A DNA stretch of 62,851 nt, filler included, from Basidiobolus meristosporus CBS 931.73 (lineage: Eukaryota; Fungi; Basidiobolomycota), in the NCBI GenBank assembly GCA_002104905.1. It is 4 parts of 4 records of this genome, joined end to end, with 100 filler letters (N's around TTAATTAATTAA, not from the genome) between each part and the next. Parts side by side here need not be neighbours in the genome. Positions count along the whole stretch, not along the records: positions 35,184 to 45,547 come from MCFE01001302.1; 3 more parts are not named here. One strand, given 5' to 3'. A model generated the notes under the pieces. It did no database searches, was not told where the DNA came from, and worked only from the letters and a program-made list of their open reading frames with translations. Below, in pieces: positions 35,184 to 45,547 of this stretch. Position numbers and translations under genes: made by a program. Every line of letters begins with the position of its first letter. Positions within the stretch are counted from its first letter, which is position 1.

Positions 35184-35389
35184 TCAATTTAACTTACCCG
35201 CCATTTAGATCAAAATCTATTGCTCGCCGTTGGTGGCTTAGTCAGGTAAGTGCAATTATAGGAGCTCTCCACGTACCTGCTGTCTCATTATAGACTTTTT
35301 TTGTAACGCAGTTGATTAACAAGCTAGTAACGGTGCTATTGTACAATTTATCTCCATATTATATTTTAAATCAGGATCAAATAACAAAA

Positions 35390-35474
35390 CCGAACATAGC
35401 TCAGTTGGTAGAGCGGAAGACTGTAGTGTTATATAGCAATCTTTAGGTCCCTGGTTCAAATCCGGGTGTTCGGA
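35390..35474 (+). tRNA. trnY: tRNA-Tyr(GTA) with a 12-nt intron (35427-35438)
   Basis: Cloverleaf CCGAACA/TGTTCGG; intron at 37/38; T-run terminator. Confidence 0.96.
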
Positions 35475-35764
35475 ATTTTTGGTTTGTGCAAACCCTATTC
35501 CTACGGGTATCACTTGTGGGTAGAGCCTTGCAGCAAAGGCTCGCCTTTTTCTTGTTGGATGTGGCTCTTTACATACGATATTTGCAATACTTTATGTTAT
35601 TGCTTTACCACCGTATCTGCAATGGTTTTAAGAAATATTGGCCCTTCCCATAGTGCATTGCCCTAAGTATACAATTTTTGCTTTGTTGCCCCTGAACGAT
35701 TGCTTCCTTTTTGATACTTGTTGGTGGGAATACCGGTTGCCAGGGAAAACAAAATATAAAAATG

Positions 35765-35838
35765 CGCTCCTGGGTGGGCTTGAACCACCAACCTCCTGAT
35801 TAACAGTCAGACGCGCTAGCCAATTGCGCCACAAGAGC
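35765..35838 (-). tRNA. trnN: tRNA-Asn(GTT)
   Basis: GCTCTTG/CAGGAGC acceptor; CT GTT AA loop; A and B boxes. Confidence 0.97.
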
Positions 35839-36149
35839 TTCAACTGACAAACGTTGGTTTCTCAAAATACTTGTATCAGTGTTCATCTTGGTTGATAGAA
35901 GCATTTGCATAAAACTAGCTTAGCAAGGATTCTCTGGATGGTGCACCTGCCTCCCAAAGTCAGCCATATCAGTATGTTCTATGCCGGGTGGATTCCCTAA
36001 CCCGACGGTTTCCATAATTCTTTGAAGCATCACGGAAATCATCTTTTAAGCGTTTGATAACCACTGTAGAATGGCAAACTCCGACCATATAGGAAACCAA
36101 CACTTGACAAAAACGACATATTCCATTAAAACTTTGTACACTCAATAAG

Positions 36150-36222
36150 GCCCGGCTAGCTCAATCGGTAGAGCGTGAGACTCTTAATCTCAAGGTTGTG
36201 GGTTCGACCCCCACGTTGGGTG
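36150..36222 (+). tRNA. trnK: tRNA-Lys(CTT)
   Basis: GCCCGGC/GTTGGGT acceptor; CT CTT AA loop. Confidence 0.96.
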
Positions 36223-36364
36223 ATGTATATTTTTTATTCTTTGTTTTTCACTTTCCTGGAATTGAGCAATAATTTTTGTGTTTTGAACGGTTGTCTGTAT
36301 ATGATATTTAAGCCGGATAGTGATATGGAAGAATGAAACAATGAATCCCAATAGAGTAATTATT

Positions 36365-36436
36365 GGACGTATAGCTCAGTGGTAGAGCAATTGACTGCAG
36401 ATCAATAGGTCGGTGGTTCAAATCCGCCTGCGTCCT
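36365..36436 (+). tRNA. trnC: tRNA-Cys(GCA)
   Basis: GGACGTA/TGCGTCC acceptor; CT GCA GA loop; U73. Confidence 0.97.
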
Positions 36437-36556
36437 CATCTTTTTTGCTAATTGAAGCGTTCATTAAAATACAATTTCGCCTAGCCACCAATTACATCTA
36501 CTCACATAAATATAGCATTCAAAAGATTGATGAAATTCATTTAGAATAATCCAAAA

Positions 36557-36629
36557 TGGAGGACCTGGGTATCGATCCCAGTGCCTCTCGCATGCTAAGC
36601 GAGCGCTCTACCATCTGAGCTAGACCCCC
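36557..36629 (-). tRNA. trnA: tRNA-Ala(AGC)
   Basis: G3-U70 pair; TT AGC AT loop. Confidence 0.97.
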
Positions 36630-37019
36630 ATATATATACACCTCGGTGGAAAACCACTTATCTTTTTTAATTCTTCAATAGATGTACTCGCATGGCAAAG
36701 AAAATACTGGCTAGCATTGAATTGAGGACCCTGTTAACAATGGTAATGTGTATGTCTCTTATTATCAACTTTGTGCGATCAAGGGGGCATTCATTGATGT
36801 ATGACTGATGGCTATTTTGGAGCATTTTTGTTATCCACACTACAGATGCTTTTGTTTCTTTCGGTTTGTTAATAGAAATCTCTCTGTGGCTACGCTATTA
36901 AGAGCTTCTGCCGTTTTCCCATATATAGCGCAATCTAGAAGTACACTAAATGTGAAAAGTAATCAAGCCTAACAGATCAGATTTCCGTATTTTCTAAGAC
37001 GGTTGTTTGCACTGGTACT

Positions 37020-37091
37020 GGCTCAATGGTTTAGTGGTATAATTCTCCCTTAGGGTGGGAGAGGTCCTGGGTTCAATTCCCAGTTGAGCCC
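37020..37091 (+). tRNA. trnP: tRNA-Pro(AGG)
   Basis: GGCTCAA/TTGAGCC acceptor; TT AGG GT loop. Confidence 0.97.
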
Positions 37092-37355
37092 TTCTTTTGT
37101 TTGTTTTCCTGTCAAAATGGATTGTTAGTAAGAATGGGGTACTCTGAGCTGCAGCAGCAATTAATGTTGTGGATTCCCCTTGGTAATTCTTGATTGACAA
37201 GTAATGTAAAAATGCAATTTTTCCATCACAACAGAGCCCTCTATTTAGTTACTTGGGGCAACTGACTACCTTTGGTTGTAATACGCACAAAGCCCGATTT
37301 AGTATCTACGCTAGGCATACTTGATCCAAATAATTTAGAGGGTCAGGAAAAGTAA

Positions 37356-37429
37356 TGTCTTCGCTCGGATTCGAACCGAGGACCGTCTGTGTGTTAGACA
37401 GACGTGATAACCAACTACACCACGAAGAC
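37356..37429 (-). tRNA. trnV: tRNA-Val(AAC)
   Basis: GTCTTCG/CGAAGAC acceptor; CT AAC AC loop. Confidence 0.97.
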
Positions 37430-37736
37430 ATATGTTTATTGGAAAGGATAGTAATGTACTTGATTGTGTTTATACATAAGGTCAATGTATAGCAAGTTTT
37501 GTGTACCGCGTGTCAAGTGCACTGGCCAAGGAATATGCCAAATTTAAGTACATCGCAACCACGGTTTCCAGCATAATTACAAATGTTTATTTTAGGTATG
37601 GAAAAAGTCTATTGGGGTCTGCTATGGGATTGGATAGTATATCTACCTGTTGTCCAAGAAATGAATAGCGTATGATAGTTACATTATGATTTTAGAAAAT
37701 CAAATGTCCAACGATCATACCATATATTATAAGTGT

Positions 37737-37808
37737 GGGGGGTTGGCGCAACGGTAGCGCGTTCGCCTCCAGAGCGAAAGGTTGCGTGTTCAAATCACGC
37801 ACTCCTCA
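37737..37808 (+). tRNA. trnW: tRNA-Trp(CCA)
   Basis: GGGGGGT/ACTCCTC acceptor; CT CCA GA loop. Confidence 0.96.
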
Positions 37809-38048
37809 CTTAATTTTTGCCACTTTTTAGCACATGTTGTAATGATGGTTAACTCAACCTCAGTCGCAGAGCAAGGTATTGTTTATTGATACATATCTCT
37901 TTGCTGTGTGTTCCTTTGTCCTATTTGATAACGTGTATGTCTACACTATCCATGTGCGGGTTTATTTTAAGCAAAGTTATTGATAACTAATTTATATTGC
38001 TAGCTCAGCTCTGATTACATACATGGCTATATCAGAGCTACAAGCTAA

Positions 38049-38122
38049 GCTCGCATAGCTCAGTTGGTTAGAGCGTGGTGCTAATAACGCCAAGGCCGCA
38101 GGTTTGACCCCTGCTGTGAGCA
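38049..38122 (+). tRNA. trnI: tRNA-Ile(AAT), T-loop variant TTTGA
   Basis: GCTCGCA/TGTGAGC acceptor; CT AAT AA loop. Confidence 0.93.
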
Positions 38123-38445
38123 TTCTCTTTTAGCCTTAGCGTAGTGTTACATCATGGCTATCCACTTTAGACTTGCGTTTATCTTTTCACGCTTTGCTGA
38201 TATTATCAAGCATTTCACATACCTACTGTACACTCCAATGCCTCTGTATCATCTCTATATTACACCGCTATCAGATGCTCCGGTATATTAGAATGGTACT
38301 GACTATCCTAGCATAAGAAATTAAGCCACTCAGAGCTTCAGGGGAATTGGGATCTCTATCCGGTGTGATGAAAATGATGTTTCTGTCTTTATGAGTAGTG
38401 CCCAAACCAAAGGGATTGCACCTGGTAGATGGCACTATCCTGGGT

Positions 38446-38517
38446 TCTCGGATAGTATAGTGGTAAGTATCCCTGCCTGTCACGCAGGAGACCCGGGTTC
38501 AATTCCCGGTCCGAGAG
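38446..38517 (+). tRNA. trnD: tRNA-Asp(GTC)
   Basis: TCTCGGA/TCCGAGA acceptor; CT GTC AC loop; G73. Confidence 0.97.
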
Positions 38518-38780
38518 TTTCTTTTGAGCTTTGAAGTAATATTTTGTATGAAAAACCTTGGTGCATGACAGAAACGAAAATCTAACCTCGATTGTGATGC
38601 TAAGTGGCCCCATAGATATTAGTCAAGATACTTTCATTTGTTAATAGAAAGCTCTGACTATATCATTAAGAGTATGTATCGAAATGCTTAGGGTGTGGTA
38701 TACGAACCCTTTGGATTTGCTAGACAATGATATACAAGGATATGTCAACTGTGAATATTTCATAGACTCAACTGTGCTCC

Positions 38781-38852
38781 TCCGCATTGGTCCAGTGGTC
38801 AGGATCTCTCGCTCTCACCGAGAAGGCCGGGGTTCGATTCCCCGATGCGGAA
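38781..38852 (+). tRNA. trnE: tRNA-Glu(CTC)
   Basis: TCCGCAT/ATGCGGA acceptor; CT CTC AC loop. Confidence 0.97.
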
Positions 38853-39225
38853 GTTCAATAATACCTTTTAATCCAAAGGTACAACTTCATGGCCCGTTTC
38901 GTTGAAGCAATGCAATCCAGCTGTTTATATATTTTTGCCGGAATGGTGAATTCCTCGTTAAGAACCTTCGAGTGGCGTGCAACCTGTATACTGAAGTGTT
39001 GTTAGCCGGGTGGTCTCTTTGTATCACACAATACCCTAATTGTGCATATTAGGAAAACAAATACCCGGTTGTATTTATACATAGTATAACACCTATACGA
39101 GATAAAAATGTATAGACACGGTTATCTATATGAATGAGCATAGTTAATGGCTAATACGAACTACTGATATACGGAAAGCTTCGCTCTCAAGCTAAGAGTT
39201 ACTTTGAGAATACAGTAGACAATAT

Positions 39226-39298
39226 GGGCGTATGGCCAAATGGATAAGGCGCCTGACTACGGATCAGGAGATTCCAGGTTCGATCCCTGGTATGCTCG
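39226..39298 (+). tRNA. trnR: tRNA-Arg(ACG)
   Basis: GGGCGTA/TATGCTC acceptor; CT ACG GA loop. Confidence 0.97.
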
Positions 39299-39977
39299 TA
39301 TTTTTGCTCTTTTAGAGTTGTATTTCCAAACCTCAAGAATATCGCACATTTGGTGAGATATCTTTACTTTAATTACTCTTACGGGTTCCTTCTTCCGCTT
39401 CAACATTAGGGAGCATACATAATACTACATTTATGGTGAAAACCAATAGTAAACTTTACTAGGCCCAGCTTGCCAGAAAAATGACGTACCCTTGATAAGC
39501 TTGGCTGGTCAAGGCTTTAGAGTTCCCATTTAGGTTATAAAGCAAAAGGTTCGATGTACGTAGGAGAGGTTAGGGCCAGCGAACAAATTAAACAAAATTA
39601 ATTTGGTTGTGTTCAATGATGCATACAGCATTTTTACAAAATTTCGTCATAACCGCCTAAGTTTACCATTACTAGACTAGTGCTAACATCTAAACTCCCT
39701 TCCCCCGAATGGAACTTGTTTCAGTGGTGTCAGTAGTCACCCGCCTAGCCAGCTGCGACCAAAGGGACTTGCATATTACTTCAATACTTTGATCTATTTC
39801 GGTTGGTATGCATATATATTCCAGTCATTAGATGATATATATTAATGGCACTGGTATGGACCACCCGGAGAAAGGTGGGCTTAAACCACCATAGCCTTGC
39901 AACCTCCCATGCTTGTTTGAAGTGGCAAAAGCATAACATAATTAAAGATAAATACTCATTGAGATACGTTACTCTCG

Positions 39978-40096
39978 AGCATCGGCCATACATACCAGAA
40001 AATACCGGATCCCGTCCGATCTCCGAAGTCAAACTGGTAATGGCCTAGTCAGTACTACGGTGGGGGACCACGTGGGAATACTAGGTGCTGATGTTT
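39978..40096 (+). rRNA. 5S: 5S rRNA
   Basis: GGCCATAC start; GGATCCCGTCCGATCTCCG; AGTACT...GGGGGACC...GGGAA; terminal helix AGCATCGGC/GCTGATGTT; T4 terminator. Confidence 0.97.
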
Positions 40097-40289
40097 TCTT
40101 CCGAATTGCTCCACTACACAATACTCTTTTGCTTCTGTTATGTGTGCGTGTGTCTGTTCTTCCTTTGCTACTGCTGTCTTTGGTATAAAAGAGTTTGCTT
40201 TCCAGATACAATGCTGCTCTCTATTCCCTAGTCATTATTGCTGAAGGGCAATTTTAGATAGTATATATAAGAAAGGGTTGTCGTATAAT

Positions 40290-40362
40290 GCCTCCTTGGC
40301 TCAGTTGGCAGAGCGTCTGCCTAGTAAGCAGAAGGTCGCTGGTTCGATTCCGGCAGAAGGCA
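40290..40362 (+). tRNA. trnT: tRNA-Thr(AGT)
   Basis: GCCTCCT/AGAAGGC acceptor (one C-A mismatch); CT AGT AA loop; TATATATAA about 28 nt upstream. Confidence 0.95.
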
Positions 40363-40555
40363 TGTTTTACATGTTGAACCTTTTATACTTTTATACTTGT
40401 ACAAGAAAATGTCTTTATTGTCTACTTCAAAGGGCTGTGCTAAGCATCCAAATGTTCAAAACATTAAGTGGCCGTTGCCCATGTCATTTACTAAATCTGG
40501 CTTTGGCTCTTATGTGACTCTTGAGTAAAAGCAAGCAAAATTACTCCAAAAGCAA

Positions 40556-40638
40556 TGAAGAGAGTGGGATTCGAACCCACGCCTCCGAAGAGATCACGGC
40601 CTTAACGTGACGCCTTAGACCAACTCGGCCATCTCTCC
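40556..40638 (-). tRNA. trnL: tRNA-Leu(AAG)
   Basis: GGAGAGA/TCTCTTC acceptor; TT AAG GC loop; long variable arm. Confidence 0.97.
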
Positions 40639-40877
40639 ATTCTTGTGGTTTGTTTACCATCGTTCTAAATGTCAATTTAACTTACCCGCCATTTAGATCA
40701 AAATCTATTGCTCGCCGTTGGTGGCTTAGTCAGGTAAGTGCAATTATAGGAGCTCTCCACGTACCTGCTGTCTCATTATAGACTTTTTTTGTAACGCAGT
40801 TGATTAACAAGCTAGTAACGGTGCTATTGTACAATTTATCTCCATATTATATTTTAAATCAGGATCAAATAACAAAA

Positions 40878-40962
40878 CCGAACATAGCTCAGTTGGTAGA
40901 GCGGAAGACTGTAGTGTTATATAGCAATCTTTAGGTCCCTGGTTCAAATCCGGGTGTTCGGA
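40878..40962 (+). tRNA. trnY: tRNA-Tyr(GTA) with intron, unit 2
   Basis: Same as the unit 1 copy; intron 40915-40926. Confidence 0.96.
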
Positions 40963-41252
40963 ATTTTTGGTTTGTGCAAACCCTATTCCTACGGGTATCA
41001 CTTGTGGGTAGAGCCTTGCAGCAAAGGCTCGCCTTTTTCTTGTTGGATGTGGCTCTTTACATACGATATTTGCAATACTTTATGTTATTGCTTTACCACC
41101 GTATCTGCAATGGTTTTAAGAAATATTGGCCCTTCCCATAGTGCATTGCCCTAAGTATACAATTTTTGCTTTGTTGCCCCTGAACGATTGCTTCCTTTTT
41201 GATACTTGTTGGTGGGAATACCGGTTGCCAGGGAAAACAAAATATAAAAATG

Positions 41253-41326
41253 CGCTCCTGGGTGGGCTTGAACCACCAACCTCCTGATTAACAGTCAGAC
41301 GCGCTAGCCAATTGCGCCACAAGAGC
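41253..41326 (-). tRNA. trnN: tRNA-Asn(GTT), unit 2
   Basis: Same as the unit 1 copy. Confidence 0.97.
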
Positions 41327-41637
41327 TTCAACTGACAAACGTTGGTTTCTCAAAATACTTGTATCAGTGTTCATCTTGGTTGATAGAAGCATTTGCATAA
41401 AACTAGCTTAGCAAGGATTCTCTGGATGGTGCACCTGCCTCCCAAAGTCAGCCATATCAGTATGTTCTATGCCGGGTGGATTCCCTAACCCGACGGTTTC
41501 CATAATTCTTTGAAGCATCACGGAAATCATCTTTTAAGCGTTTGATAACCACTGTAGAATGGCAAACTCCGACCATATAGGAAACCAACACTTGACAAAA
41601 ACGACATATTCCATTAAAACTTTGTACACTCAATAAG

Positions 41638-41710
41638 GCCCGGCTAGCTCAATCGGTAGAGCGTGAGACTCTTAATCTCAAGGTTGTGGGTTCGACCCCC
41701 ACGTTGGGTG
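41638..41710 (+). tRNA. trnK: tRNA-Lys(CTT), unit 2
   Basis: Same as the unit 1 copy. Confidence 0.96.
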
Positions 41711-41852
41711 ATGTATATTTTTTATTCTTTGTTTTTCACTTTCCTGGAATTGAGCAATAATTTTTGTGTTTTGAACGGTTGTCTGTATATGATATTTAAG
41801 CCGGATAGTGATATGGAAGAATGAAACAATGAATCCCAATAGAGTAATTATT

Positions 41853-41924
41853 GGACGTATAGCTCAGTGGTAGAGCAATTGACTGCAGATCAATAGGTCG
41901 GTGGTTCAAATCCGCCTGCGTCCT
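41853..41924 (+). tRNA. trnC: tRNA-Cys(GCA), unit 2
   Basis: Same as the unit 1 copy. Confidence 0.97.
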
Positions 41925-42044
41925 CATCTTTTTTGCTAATTGAAGCGTTCATTAAAATACAATTTCGCCTAGCCACCAATTACATCTACTCACATAAATA
42001 TAGCATTCAAAAGATTGATGAAATTCATTTAGAATAATCCAAAA

Positions 42045-42117
42045 TGGAGGACCTGGGTATCGATCCCAGTGCCTCTCGCATGCTAAGCGAGCGCTCTACC
42101 ATCTGAGCTAGACCCCC
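42045..42117 (-). tRNA. trnA: tRNA-Ala(AGC), unit 2
   Basis: Same as the unit 1 copy. Confidence 0.97.
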
Positions 42118-42507
42118 ATATATATACACCTCGGTGGAAAACCACTTATCTTTTTTAATTCTTCAATAGATGTACTCGCATGGCAAAGAAAATACTGGCT
42201 AGCATTGAATTGAGGACCCTGTTAACAATGGTAATGTGTATGTCTCTTATTATCAACTTTGTGCGATCAAGGGGGCATTCATTGATGTATGACTGATGGC
42301 TATTTTGGAGCATTTTTGTTATCCACACTACAGATGCTTTTGTTTCTTTCGGTTTGTTAATAGAAATCTCTCTGTGGCTACGCTATTAAGAGCTTCTGCC
42401 GTTTTCCCATATATAGCGCAATCTAGAAGTACACTAAATGTGAAAAGTAATCAAGCCTAACAGATCAGATTTCCGTATTTTCTAAGACGGTTGTTTGCAC
42501 TGGTACT

Positions 42508-42579
42508 GGCTCAATGGTTTAGTGGTATAATTCTCCCTTAGGGTGGGAGAGGTCCTGGGTTCAATTCCCAGTTGAGCCC
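42508..42579 (+). tRNA. trnP: tRNA-Pro(AGG), unit 2
   Basis: Same as the unit 1 copy. Confidence 0.97.
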
Positions 42580-42843
42580 TTCTTTTGTTTGTTTTCCTGT
42601 CAAAATGGATTGTTAGTAAGAATGGGGTACTCTGAGCTGCAGCAGCAATTAATGTTGTGGATTCCCCTTGGTAATTCTTGATTGACAAGTAATGTAAAAA
42701 TGCAATTTTTCCATCACAACAGAGCCCTCTATTTAGTTACTTGGGGCAACTGACTACCTTTGGTTGTAATACGCACAAAGCCCGATTTAGTATCTACGCT
42801 AGGCATACTTGATCCAAATAATTTAGAGGGTCAGGAAAAGTAA

Positions 42844-42917
42844 TGTCTTCGCTCGGATTCGAACCGAGGACCGTCTGTGTGTTAGACAGACGTGATAACC
42901 AACTACACCACGAAGAC
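42844..42917 (-). tRNA. trnV: tRNA-Val(AAC), unit 2
   Basis: Same as the unit 1 copy. Confidence 0.97.
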
Positions 42918-43224
42918 ATATGTTTATTGGAAAGGATAGTAATGTACTTGATTGTGTTTATACATAAGGTCAATGTATAGCAAGTTTTGTGTACCGCGTG
43001 TCAAGTGCACTGGCCAAGGAATATGCCAAATTTAAGTACATCGCAACCACGGTTTCCAGCATAATTACAAATGTTTATTTTAGGTATGGAAAAAGTCTAT
43101 TGGGGTCTGCTATGGGATTGGATAGTATATCTACCTGTTGTCCAAGAAATGAATAGCGTATGATAGTTACATTATGATTTTAGAAAATCAAATGTCCAAC
43201 GATCATACCATATATTATAAGTGT

Positions 43225-43296
43225 GGGGGGTTGGCGCAACGGTAGCGCGTTCGCCTCCAGAGCGAAAGGTTGCGTGTTCAAATCACGCACTCCTCA
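43225..43296 (+). tRNA. trnW: tRNA-Trp(CCA), unit 2
   Basis: Same as the unit 1 copy. Confidence 0.96.
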
Positions 43297-43536
43297 CTTA
43301 ATTTTTGCCACTTTTTAGCACATGTTGTAATGATGGTTAACTCAACCTCAGTCGCAGAGCAAGGTATTGTTTATTGATACATATCTCTTTGCTGTGTGTT
43401 CCTTTGTCCTATTTGATAACGTGTATGTCTACACTATCCATGTGCGGGTTTATTTTAAGCAAAGTTATTGATAACTAATTTATATTGCTAGCTCAGCTCT
43501 GATTACATACATGGCTATATCAGAGCTACAAGCTAA

Positions 43537-43610
43537 GCTCGCATAGCTCAGTTGGTTAGAGCGTGGTGCTAATAACGCCAAGGCCGCAGGTTTGACCCCT
43601 GCTGTGAGCA
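43537..43610 (+). tRNA. trnI: tRNA-Ile(AAT), unit 2
   Basis: Same as the unit 1 copy, including the TTTGA T-loop. Confidence 0.93.
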
Positions 43611-43933
43611 TTCTCTTTTAGCCTTAGCGTAGTGTTACATCATGGCTATCCACTTTAGACTTGCGTTTATCTTTTCACGCTTTGCTGATATTATCAAGCA
43701 TTTCACATACCTACTGTACACTCCAATGCCTCTGTATCATCTCTATATTACACCGCTATCAGATGCTCCGGTATATTAGAATGGTACTGACTATCCTAGC
43801 ATAAGAAATTAAGCCACTCAGAGCTTCAGGGGAATTGGGATCTCTATCCGGTGTGATGAAAATGATGTTTCTGTCTTTATGAGTAGTGCCCAAATCAAAG
43901 GGATTGCACCTGGTAGATGGCACTATCCTGGGT

Positions 43934-44005
43934 TCTCGGATAGTATAGTGGTAAGTATCCCTGCCTGTCACGCAGGAGACCCGGGTTCAATTCCCGGTCC
44001 GAGAG
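43934..44005 (+). tRNA. trnD: tRNA-Asp(GTC), unit 2
   Basis: Same as the unit 1 copy. Confidence 0.97.
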
Positions 44006-44268
44006 TTTCTTTTGAGCTTTGAAGTAATATTTTGTATGAAAAACCTTGGTGCATGACAGAAACGAAAATCTAACCTCGATTGTGATGCTAAGTGGCCCCA
44101 TAGATATTAGTCAAGATACTTTCATTTGTTAATAGAAAGCTCTGACTATATCATTAAGAGTATGTATCGAAATGCTTAGGGTGTGGTATACGAACCCTTT
44201 GGATTTGCTAGACAATGATATACAAGGATATGTCAACTGTGAATATTTCATAGACTCAACTGTGCTCC

Positions 44269-44340
44269 TCCGCATTGGTCCAGTGGTCAGGATCTCTCGC
44301 TCTCACCGAGAAGGCCGGGGTTCGATTCCCCGATGCGGAA
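44269..44340 (+). tRNA. trnE: tRNA-Glu(CTC), unit 2
   Basis: Same as the unit 1 copy. Confidence 0.97.
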
Positions 44341-44713
44341 GTTCAATAATACCTTTTAATCCAAAGGTACAACTTCATGGCCCGTTTCGTTGAAGCAATG
44401 CAATCCAGCTGTTTATATATTTTTGCCGGAATGGTGAATTCCTCGTTAAGAACCTTCGAGTGGCGTGCAACCTGTATACTGAAGTGTTGTTAGCCGGGTG
44501 GTCTCTTTGTATCACACAATACCCTAATTGTGCATATTAGGAAAACAAATACCCGGTTGTATTTATACATAGTATAACACCTATACGAGATAAAAATGTA
44601 TAGACACGGTTATCTATATGAATGAGCATAGTTAATGGCTAATACGAACTACTGATATACGGAAAGCTTCGCTCTCAAGCTAAGAGTTACTTTGAGAATA
44701 CAGTAGACAATAT

Positions 44714-44786
44714 GGGCGTATGGCCAAATGGATAAGGCGCCTGACTACGGATCAGGAGATTCCAGGTTCGATCCCTGGTATGCTCG
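44714..44786 (+). tRNA. trnR: tRNA-Arg(ACG), unit 2
   Basis: Same as the unit 1 copy. Confidence 0.97.
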
Positions 44787-45465
44787 TATTTTTGCTCTTT
44801 TAGAGTTGTATTTCCAAACCTCAAGAATATCGCACATTTGGTGAGATATCTTTACTTTAATTACTCTTACGGGTTCCTTCTTCCGCTTCAACATTAGGGA
44901 GCATACATAATACTACATTTATGGTGAAAACCAATAGTAAACTTTACTAGGCCCAGCTTGCCAGAAAAATGACGTACCCTTGATAAGCTTGGCTGGTCAA
45001 GGCTTTAGAGTTCCCATTTAGGTTATAAAGCAAAAGGTTCGATGTACGTAGGAGAGGTTAGGGCCAGCGAACAAATTAAACAAAATTAATTTGGTTGTGT
45101 TCAATGATGCATACAGCATTTTTACAAAATTTCGTCATAACCGCCTAAGTTTACCATTACTAGACTAGTGCTAACATCTAAACTCCCTTCCCCCGAATGG
45201 AACTTGTTTCAGTGGTGTCAGTAGTCACCCGCCTAGCCAGCTGCGACCAAAGGGACTTGCATATTACTTCAATACTTTGATCTATTTCGGTTGGTATGCA
45301 TATATATTCCAGTCATTAGATGATATATATTAATGGCACTGGTATGGACCACCCGGAGAAAGGTGGGCTTAAACCACCATAGCCTTGCAACCTCCCATGC
45401 TTGTTTGAAGTGGCAAAAGCATAACATAATTAAAGATAAATACTCATTGAGATACGTTACTCTCG

Positions 45466-45547
45466 AGCATCGGCCATACATACCAGAAAATACCGGATCC
45501 CGTCCGATCTCCGAAGTCAAACTGGTAATGGCCTAGTCAGTACTACG
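45466..45547 (+). rRNA. 5S: 5S rRNA, unit 2 (cut by the contig end)
   Basis: Identical to the first 82 nt of 39978-40096. Confidence 0.95.

Follow-up and report, generated by a model that had tools for sequence, protein, structure and literature searches.

A 5,488-bp tandem repeat of 14 non-redundant tRNA genes and a 5S rRNA gene in the fungus Basidiobolus meristosporus

The window analysed here, a stretch of 62,851 nucleotides in which four parts of the genome of the fungus Basidiobolus meristosporus CBS 931.73 (GCA_002104905.1) are joined with filler, contains in one of those parts (positions 35184-45547, from MCFE01001302.1, free of N) a homogenised head-to-tail tandem array of 15 separate RNA polymerase III (Pol III) genes. 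The repeat has a period of 5488 bp, and its unit carries 14 transfer RNA (tRNA) genes for 14 different amino acids together with one 5S ribosomal RNA (rRNA) gene. We consider it probable that this unit, with its 14 separately transcribed tRNA genes and 5S gene, tandemly repeated and kept near-identical, is a dosage module. Tandem tRNA arrays, some with 5S genes, have been described in Entamoeba (PMC2652664), in Hydractinia and Nematostella (PMC11067881), at human 1q23.3 (PMC4041453) and in a survey of 74 eukaryotes (PMC2888827), and a search of the open-access literature gave no description of a comparable unit in a fungus. Unusually large and clean, with 15 Pol III genes, no amino acid repeated, no tRNA with uridine at anticodon position 34 (U34) and a 5S gene included, the unit is a well-documented instance rather than a new principle.

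The period was read from the tRNA-Tyr gene, which recurs at 35390 and 40878. Between these points lies one full unit (35390-40877) with all 14 tRNA genes and the 5S gene; it is preceded by the tail of another (the Leu-Tyr spacer, 35184-35389, identical to the stretch 5488 bp downstream) and followed by a second, partial unit (40878-45547) that runs from Tyr to Arg and through the first 82 nt of the 5S gene before the piece ends, so that 1.89 units are visible. By ARAGORN and Rfam, 12 tRNA genes and a portion of the 5S gene repeat in register in this second unit, and at an offset of 5488 bp the copies show a single mismatch in the 4876 bp compared, spacers included (C at 38407 versus T at 43895). 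Because both ends of the piece lie within the repeat, the array probably continues beyond two copies.

The tRNA genes were identified with ARAGORN and Rfam, all 14 scoring 53-72 bits against an Rfam gathering score of 29. The unit opens with Tyr-GTA (35390-35474, plus strand; 59.9 bits) and continues through Asn-GTT (35765-35838, minus; 65.7 bits), Lys-CTT (36150-36222, plus; 64 bits), Cys-GCA (36365-36436, plus; 71.9 bits), Ala-AGC (36557-36629, minus; 53.4 bits, the lowest of the set), Pro-AGG (37020-37091, plus; 57.4 bits), Val-AAC (37356-37429, minus; 64.7 bits), Trp-CCA (37737-37808, plus; 65.1 bits), Ile-AAT (38049-38122, plus; 63.2 bits; second copy at 43537-43610), Asp-GTC (38446-38517, plus; 64.1 bits), Glu-CTC (38781-38852, plus; 62.8 bits) and Arg-ACG (39226-39298, plus; 60.8 bits) to the 5S gene (39978-40096, plus), beyond which lie Thr-AGT (40290-40362, plus; 65.1 bits) and Leu-AAG (40556-40638, minus; 56.1 bits), the last with a long variable arm. 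The sequence-only reading had named these same 14 tRNAs between 35390 and 40638; ARAGORN and Rfam return exactly that list, anticodon for anticodon, with no amino acid repeated, to which the 5S gene is an addition.

That 5S gene is full length, matching RF00001 at 108.6 bits over model positions 1-120 of 120 (gathering score 38), and runs directly into a T4 run; its second copy (45466-45547) is truncated at the 3' end by the end of the piece. We take its sequence to be unlike that of animal 5S. Its place within the unit makes the latter a general Pol III module and not a tRNA unit alone. A 17-nt resemblance at 35724-35740, considered as a second 5S gene or relic, proved to be a chance 10-nt match.

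The first gene required particular care, since it carries a 12-nt intron (35427-35438) at the canonical 37/38 site. When introns were allowed, ARAGORN put this one a base early, at position 36, and miscalled the gene as Asp (gtc); without the intron option it reported an undetermined type with a 4-base anticodon. Once the intron is removed the cloverleaf is sound, and the C1-G72 pair, the CTGTAGA loop after splicing and A73, together with a body resembling eukaryotic tRNA-Tyr, indicate that the gene is Tyr. Given this miscall, automatic annotation of the array could show a false second Asp gene.

Each of the 15 genes carries Pol III signals of its own. A run of T4-T6, the Pol III terminator, lies within 20 nt downstream of all 15, in the form of a T5 run directly 3' of both Tyr and Arg. 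The A box stands at position 8 in every one of the 14 tRNA genes, and the B box conforms to consensus in 13, the Ile gene reading GGTTTGACC; internal A and B boxes and an oligo-T terminator are the marks of a type 2 Pol III promoter, just as the full-length match to the structure model and the TTTT terminator identify the 5S gene as a eukaryotic 5S (Pol III type 1) gene. Four genes lie on the minus strand, so the genes must be transcribed separately and do not form a polycistron; the strand bias itself (4 of 15) is not significant (P=0.12). Upstream, a shared TATA element is absent from most of the genes. An organellar or giant-virus tRNA cluster was also considered and rejected: the seven families with adenosine at position 34 (A34), the nuclear-type 5S, spacers of at least 120 bp and the individual Pol III terminators are all indicative of nuclear DNA.

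The genes are spaced more evenly than expected by chance. Spacers measure 120-678 bp, with a mean start-to-start distance of 366 bp; their coefficient of variation is 0.45 versus 0.91 for a random partition (P=7e-4), and the probability of finding no spacer under 120 bp is 5e-4. The longest, between Arg and 5S (39299-39977), holds no recognisable gene. We found no spacer-to-spacer homology across the unit, which indicates that it did not grow by internal duplication. Tandem Repeats Finder returned no rows for the spacers, where only short, weak repeat families are present, and no other Rfam family appears in the unit at E values up to 10. Neither a scan for A-box/B-box relics nor ARAGORN allowing introns revealed a decayed tRNA gene such as Ser-AGA, the Arg-5S spacer included, and a search for coding or transposon remnants gave no open reading frame longer than 83 amino acids and no Pfam hit among the ten longest.

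In anticodon content, the 14 tRNAs comprise seven A34 species (Ala, Pro, Val, Ile, Arg, Thr and Leu), four with G34 (Tyr, Asn, Cys and Asp), three with C34 (Lys, Glu and Trp) and none with U34, as the sequence-only reading had held in every case. Known substrates of the inosine-34 enzyme ADAT2/ADAT3 are the A34 tRNAs for Ala, Pro, Thr, Val, Ser, Arg(ACG), Leu(AAG) and Ile (PMC4581194). Seven of these eight families are present as A34, and are thus predicted substrates; only Ser-AGA is absent, again as first noted and as ARAGORN recovers. Measured post hoc against simple random-draw nulls, the content is improbable at several levels: that 14 genes should all serve distinct amino acids has P <=0.0021 (an upper bound, with 20 equal classes), that none of 14 drawn from the 46 usual eukaryotic anticodon species should be U34 has P=0.002, and that at least seven of the eight A34 species should be included has P=4e-4, while the exact anticodon set, with the 14 amino acids given and anticodons chosen uniformly, has a chance of 1/16200. 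Standard wobble pairing would allow these 14 tRNAs to decode 32 of the 61 sense codons; the tRNAs for Ser, Gly, Phe, His, Gln and Met, and all U34 tRNAs, must be encoded elsewhere in the genome.

A separate observation concerns a second modification at position 34. In organisms that use queuosine, the GUN tRNAs for Tyr, Asn, Asp and His receive it at this position; three of these four (Tyr-GTA, Asn-GTT and Asp-GTC) are in the unit, His being absent, so that 10 of the 14 tRNAs are predicted to be substrates for inosine or queuosine.

How the structure might serve dosage can be set out in a few steps. Unequal crossing-over or gene conversion would keep the units alike, and with the units kept alike all 15 genes would be multiplied in a fixed 1:1 ratio. 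In this way 14 amino acids would each gain copies of a single decoder, alongside 5S rRNA, the decoder being the A34 (inosine) or C34 species wherever a choice of anticodon exists, and the array would serve translation capacity as a dosage module. The non-redundant content would most likely be the result of selection for balanced dosage on a cluster assembled from the tRNA species that are commonest in the genome; it is the lack of redundancy that suggests selection for balanced content. The use of A34 and C34 agrees with what is seen in eukaryotes generally, where inosine tRNA genes are the most numerous and their products read preferred codons. If the unit follows this rule, as the sequence-only reading supposed, its anticodons would also match the codons preferred in highly expressed genes of this genome.

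A number of observations weigh against a dosage role, or against the description of the content as curated that the sequence-only reading had offered. Five of the 14 families (Tyr, Asn, Cys, Asp and Trp) have one possible anticodon. Whether Lys and Glu use C34 or U34 varies by species, which weakens the claim of curation. If A34 genes make up 50-80% of each family, the finding of A34 in seven of seven such families and C34 in two of two (Lys and Glu) has P=0.002-0.1. The cloverleaves, too, are intact except for four single blemishes: U56 in Ile (T loop TTTGACC), a U6xU67 mismatch in Ala (where G3oU70 is present), a C5xA68 mismatch in Thr and a G1oU72 wobble pair in Lys. Those of Ile, Ala and Lys are common to both copies; that of Thr is visible in one copy only. 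The Ile change replaces the near-invariant C56, a B-box residue that pairs with G19 and that is critical for TFIIIC binding in yeast, as learned from SUP4 mutants. Both the Ile C56U and the Lys C72U are CpG-to-TpG changes, and in the spacers (37% G+C) the observed/expected ratio is 0.60 for CpG, with 1.21 for TpG and 1.12 for CpA. Such depletion of CpG with raised TpG and CpA would be expected if the cytosines of a repeat, perhaps a silent one, were methylated, and together with the blemished genes it suggests that the array may be partly silenced. Lastly, 1.9 units are seen, and the case for a longer array rests on both contig ends falling within the repeat.

The idea of curated content therefore survives in part. 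Non-redundancy and the presence of seven A34 species remain improbable under random draws; set against this are the dominance of A34 genes across eukaryotes, the single-anticodon families and the four blemished genes, which the label fits badly. Of the two signals non-redundancy is the more robust, and anticodon choice is the weaker evidence because five families offer no choice and because A34 genes dominate their families across eukaryotes, where the codons they read are preferred (PMC7289440, PMC4581194). Nor is non-redundancy automatic in such arrays, as the Entamoeba units [ASS], [TQQ] and [VMEDR5E] each repeat an amino acid (PMC2652664).

This distinction bears on a possible though, in our judgement, doubtful alternative: that common tRNA genes and a 5S gene, already clustered, were amplified neutrally by unequal crossing-over, with no selection for what the cluster contained. 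The impression of major species would then arise because common genes are the likeliest to be caught, and because amplification itself makes a species high-copy. Neutral spread is consistent with the prevalence of A34 genes in eukaryotes generally—at a share of 70-80% the anticodon pattern has P=0.02-0.1—with the five families that lack an alternative anticodon, and with blemished genes being carried in both copies; moreover, Entamoeba arrays have no link to codon usage (PMC2652664), and across eukaryotes tRNA clusters have independent origins and a rapid turnover (PMC2888827). What it explains poorly is a run of 14 genes without a repeated amino acid (P <=0.002 even under the null most favourable to it), given that Entamoeba units do repeat amino acids.

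Evenness and CpG depletion bear instead on the proposal that the array is architectural or heterochromatic: a set of TFIIIC/Pol III binding sites, lying for instance beside a centromere or at a boundary, that yields little or no tRNA. A precedent comes from the centromeres of fission yeast, with conserved tRNA gene clusters (14 amino acids) and homogenised 5S repeats that are probably boundaries (PMC6538654), and the fungal source, the regular spacing, the spacer CpG ratio and the two of four blemishes that are CpG-to-TpG changes (Ile C56U and Lys C72U) are all in keeping with it. Yet the gene order here, Y N K C A P V W I D E R 5S T L, is unlike the fission-yeast clusters (DVAIR, RKLEF and NME); 13 of the 14 tRNA genes retain the B-box consensus and the 5S gene is full length; and the fission-yeast centromeric tRNA genes are themselves judged functional (PMC6538654), so that a dosage role would be compatible with this reading. 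We regard a largely silent architectural repeat as decidedly unlikely. Very improbable is an assembly artefact or small circle, the assembly having turned one 5.5-kb locus, or an extrachromosomal circle, into a concatemer of 1.9 copies. The few, nearly identical copies seen, and a contig that consists of the repeat alone with both ends inside a unit, are what such an origin would produce, but the difference between 38407 (C) and 43895 (T) argues for two distinct copies, and contigs that start and end within the repeat also have the look of a collapsed long array. A dosage module thus remains the reading that we think probable.

Among described systems the Entamoeba arrays are like this one in consisting of head-to-tail units of tRNA genes only, some with 5S, in near-uniform copies, and there the tRNA set is partitioned among different arrays (Clark et al. 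2006; Tawari et al. 2008, PMC2652664). The differences are of scale and content: the largest Entamoeba unit is 2364 bp, with six tRNAs and 5S, against 5488 bp with 14 tRNAs and 5S here; Entamoeba spacers are full of microsatellite-like short tandem repeats, whereas Tandem Repeats Finder detects none here; and Entamoeba units can repeat an amino acid and the arrays include TGT and TAC (U34) genes, neither of which is the case here (PMC2652664). Entamoeba belongs to the Amoebozoa, whereas the present unit is fungal. Of the traits that characterise an Entamoeba-type array, the head-to-tail unit, near-identity and a 5S gene inside the unit are found here, and spacer microsatellites are not; a further trait of the type is for arrays to carry, in many copies, the majority of a genome's tRNA genes.

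The 3.18-kb unit of Xenopus laevis has eight tRNA genes and the human 1q23.3 unit fewer than 14, and we know of no 5S gene in either. Both resemble the present repeat as multi-kb tandem units with several different tRNA genes, and both vary in copy number; the human unit (PMC4041453) differs in being 7.3 kb long and GC-rich and in binding CTCF. The Hydractinia and Nematostella arrays share with it evenly spaced, near-identical Pol III genes (tRNA and 5S) and spacers of hundreds to thousands of bases (PMC11067881), and the large clusters of Nematostella, zebrafish and Xenopus are likewise heterogeneous, with amino acids mixed (PMC2888827). In the text consulted, these two animal studies describe no single unit with 14 different tRNAs and 5S (PMC11067881, PMC2888827).

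In the centromeric tRNA clusters of the fungi Schizosaccharomyces octosporus and S. cryophilus gene order is conserved and spacers are not, and the tRNA clusters and 5S repeats are separate, in inverted or complex layouts, unlike the one simple tandem unit found here (PMC6538654). Yarrowia lipolytica offers another case of fungal linkage of 5S to tRNA genes outside the ribosomal DNA (rDNA); there, however, the 5S sequence is reported to belong to a dicistronic tRNA-5S Pol III gene (PMC2566860). Here Arg-ACG ends in a T5 run of its own and is separated from 5S by nearly 700 bp, so the two do not form a dicistronic gene of the Yarrowia type.

The 5S gene also has a close relative in a metagenome. 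A metagenome scan with its 3' half gave an exact match in one contig (L001; Ga0075365_10056532, 2608 bp), while scans of genome-contig and viral-contig collections gave none. Ten ATG-start open reading frames of the array, looked up as exact protein sequences, were likewise absent from the collection, and fragments of the 5S sequence turned up in no paper on full-text search. The 5S gene of L001 (981-1099) differs from that of the array at 1 of 119 nt; upstream of the gene the alignment is partial and interrupted by indels. Some 900 bp separate this 5S gene from the 3' end of a eukaryotic large-subunit (LSU) rRNA gene (LSU at 1998-2608), beyond which it lies on the opposite strand, within an rDNA spacer; L001 has no tRNA genes, and neither it nor the piece that holds the array contains coding sequence. 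We take this 5S/LSU arrangement to resemble the rDNA unit of S. cerevisiae. Compared by eye with the 25S 3' probe of Candida albicans given in PMC5775620, the last ~110 nt of the LSU gene are ~85% identical and hence fungus-like, whereas the array 5S differs plainly from the Candida 5S shown in that paper. On the evidence of this one contig, the array 5S would be assigned to a fungus other than a budding yeast. Since the L001 gene sits in an rDNA spacer devoid of tRNA genes and is one nucleotide away from the 5S of the array, near-identical 5S genes occur in two genomic contexts, a tRNA array and an rDNA spacer, in close relatives or possibly in one genome.

Although tandem tRNA arrays are known from several eukaryotes, their function is still called obscure, and the question at stake is whether they govern how much tRNA is available and follow codon bias, or are structural repeats that stay silent. 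The boldest form of the dosage proposal, which we consider unlikely, is that in this fungus the copy number of a single non-redundant cassette (14 A34, G34 and C34 tRNAs and 5S, in a 1:1 ratio) determines the supply of the main decoders, complemented by another array with Ser, Gly, Phe, His, Gln and Met such as the sequence-only reading had predicted. Were that so, the tRNA pool and codon bias would co-evolve with the size of the array, and B. meristosporus would provide a natural system in which copy-number variation at a single locus retunes translation.

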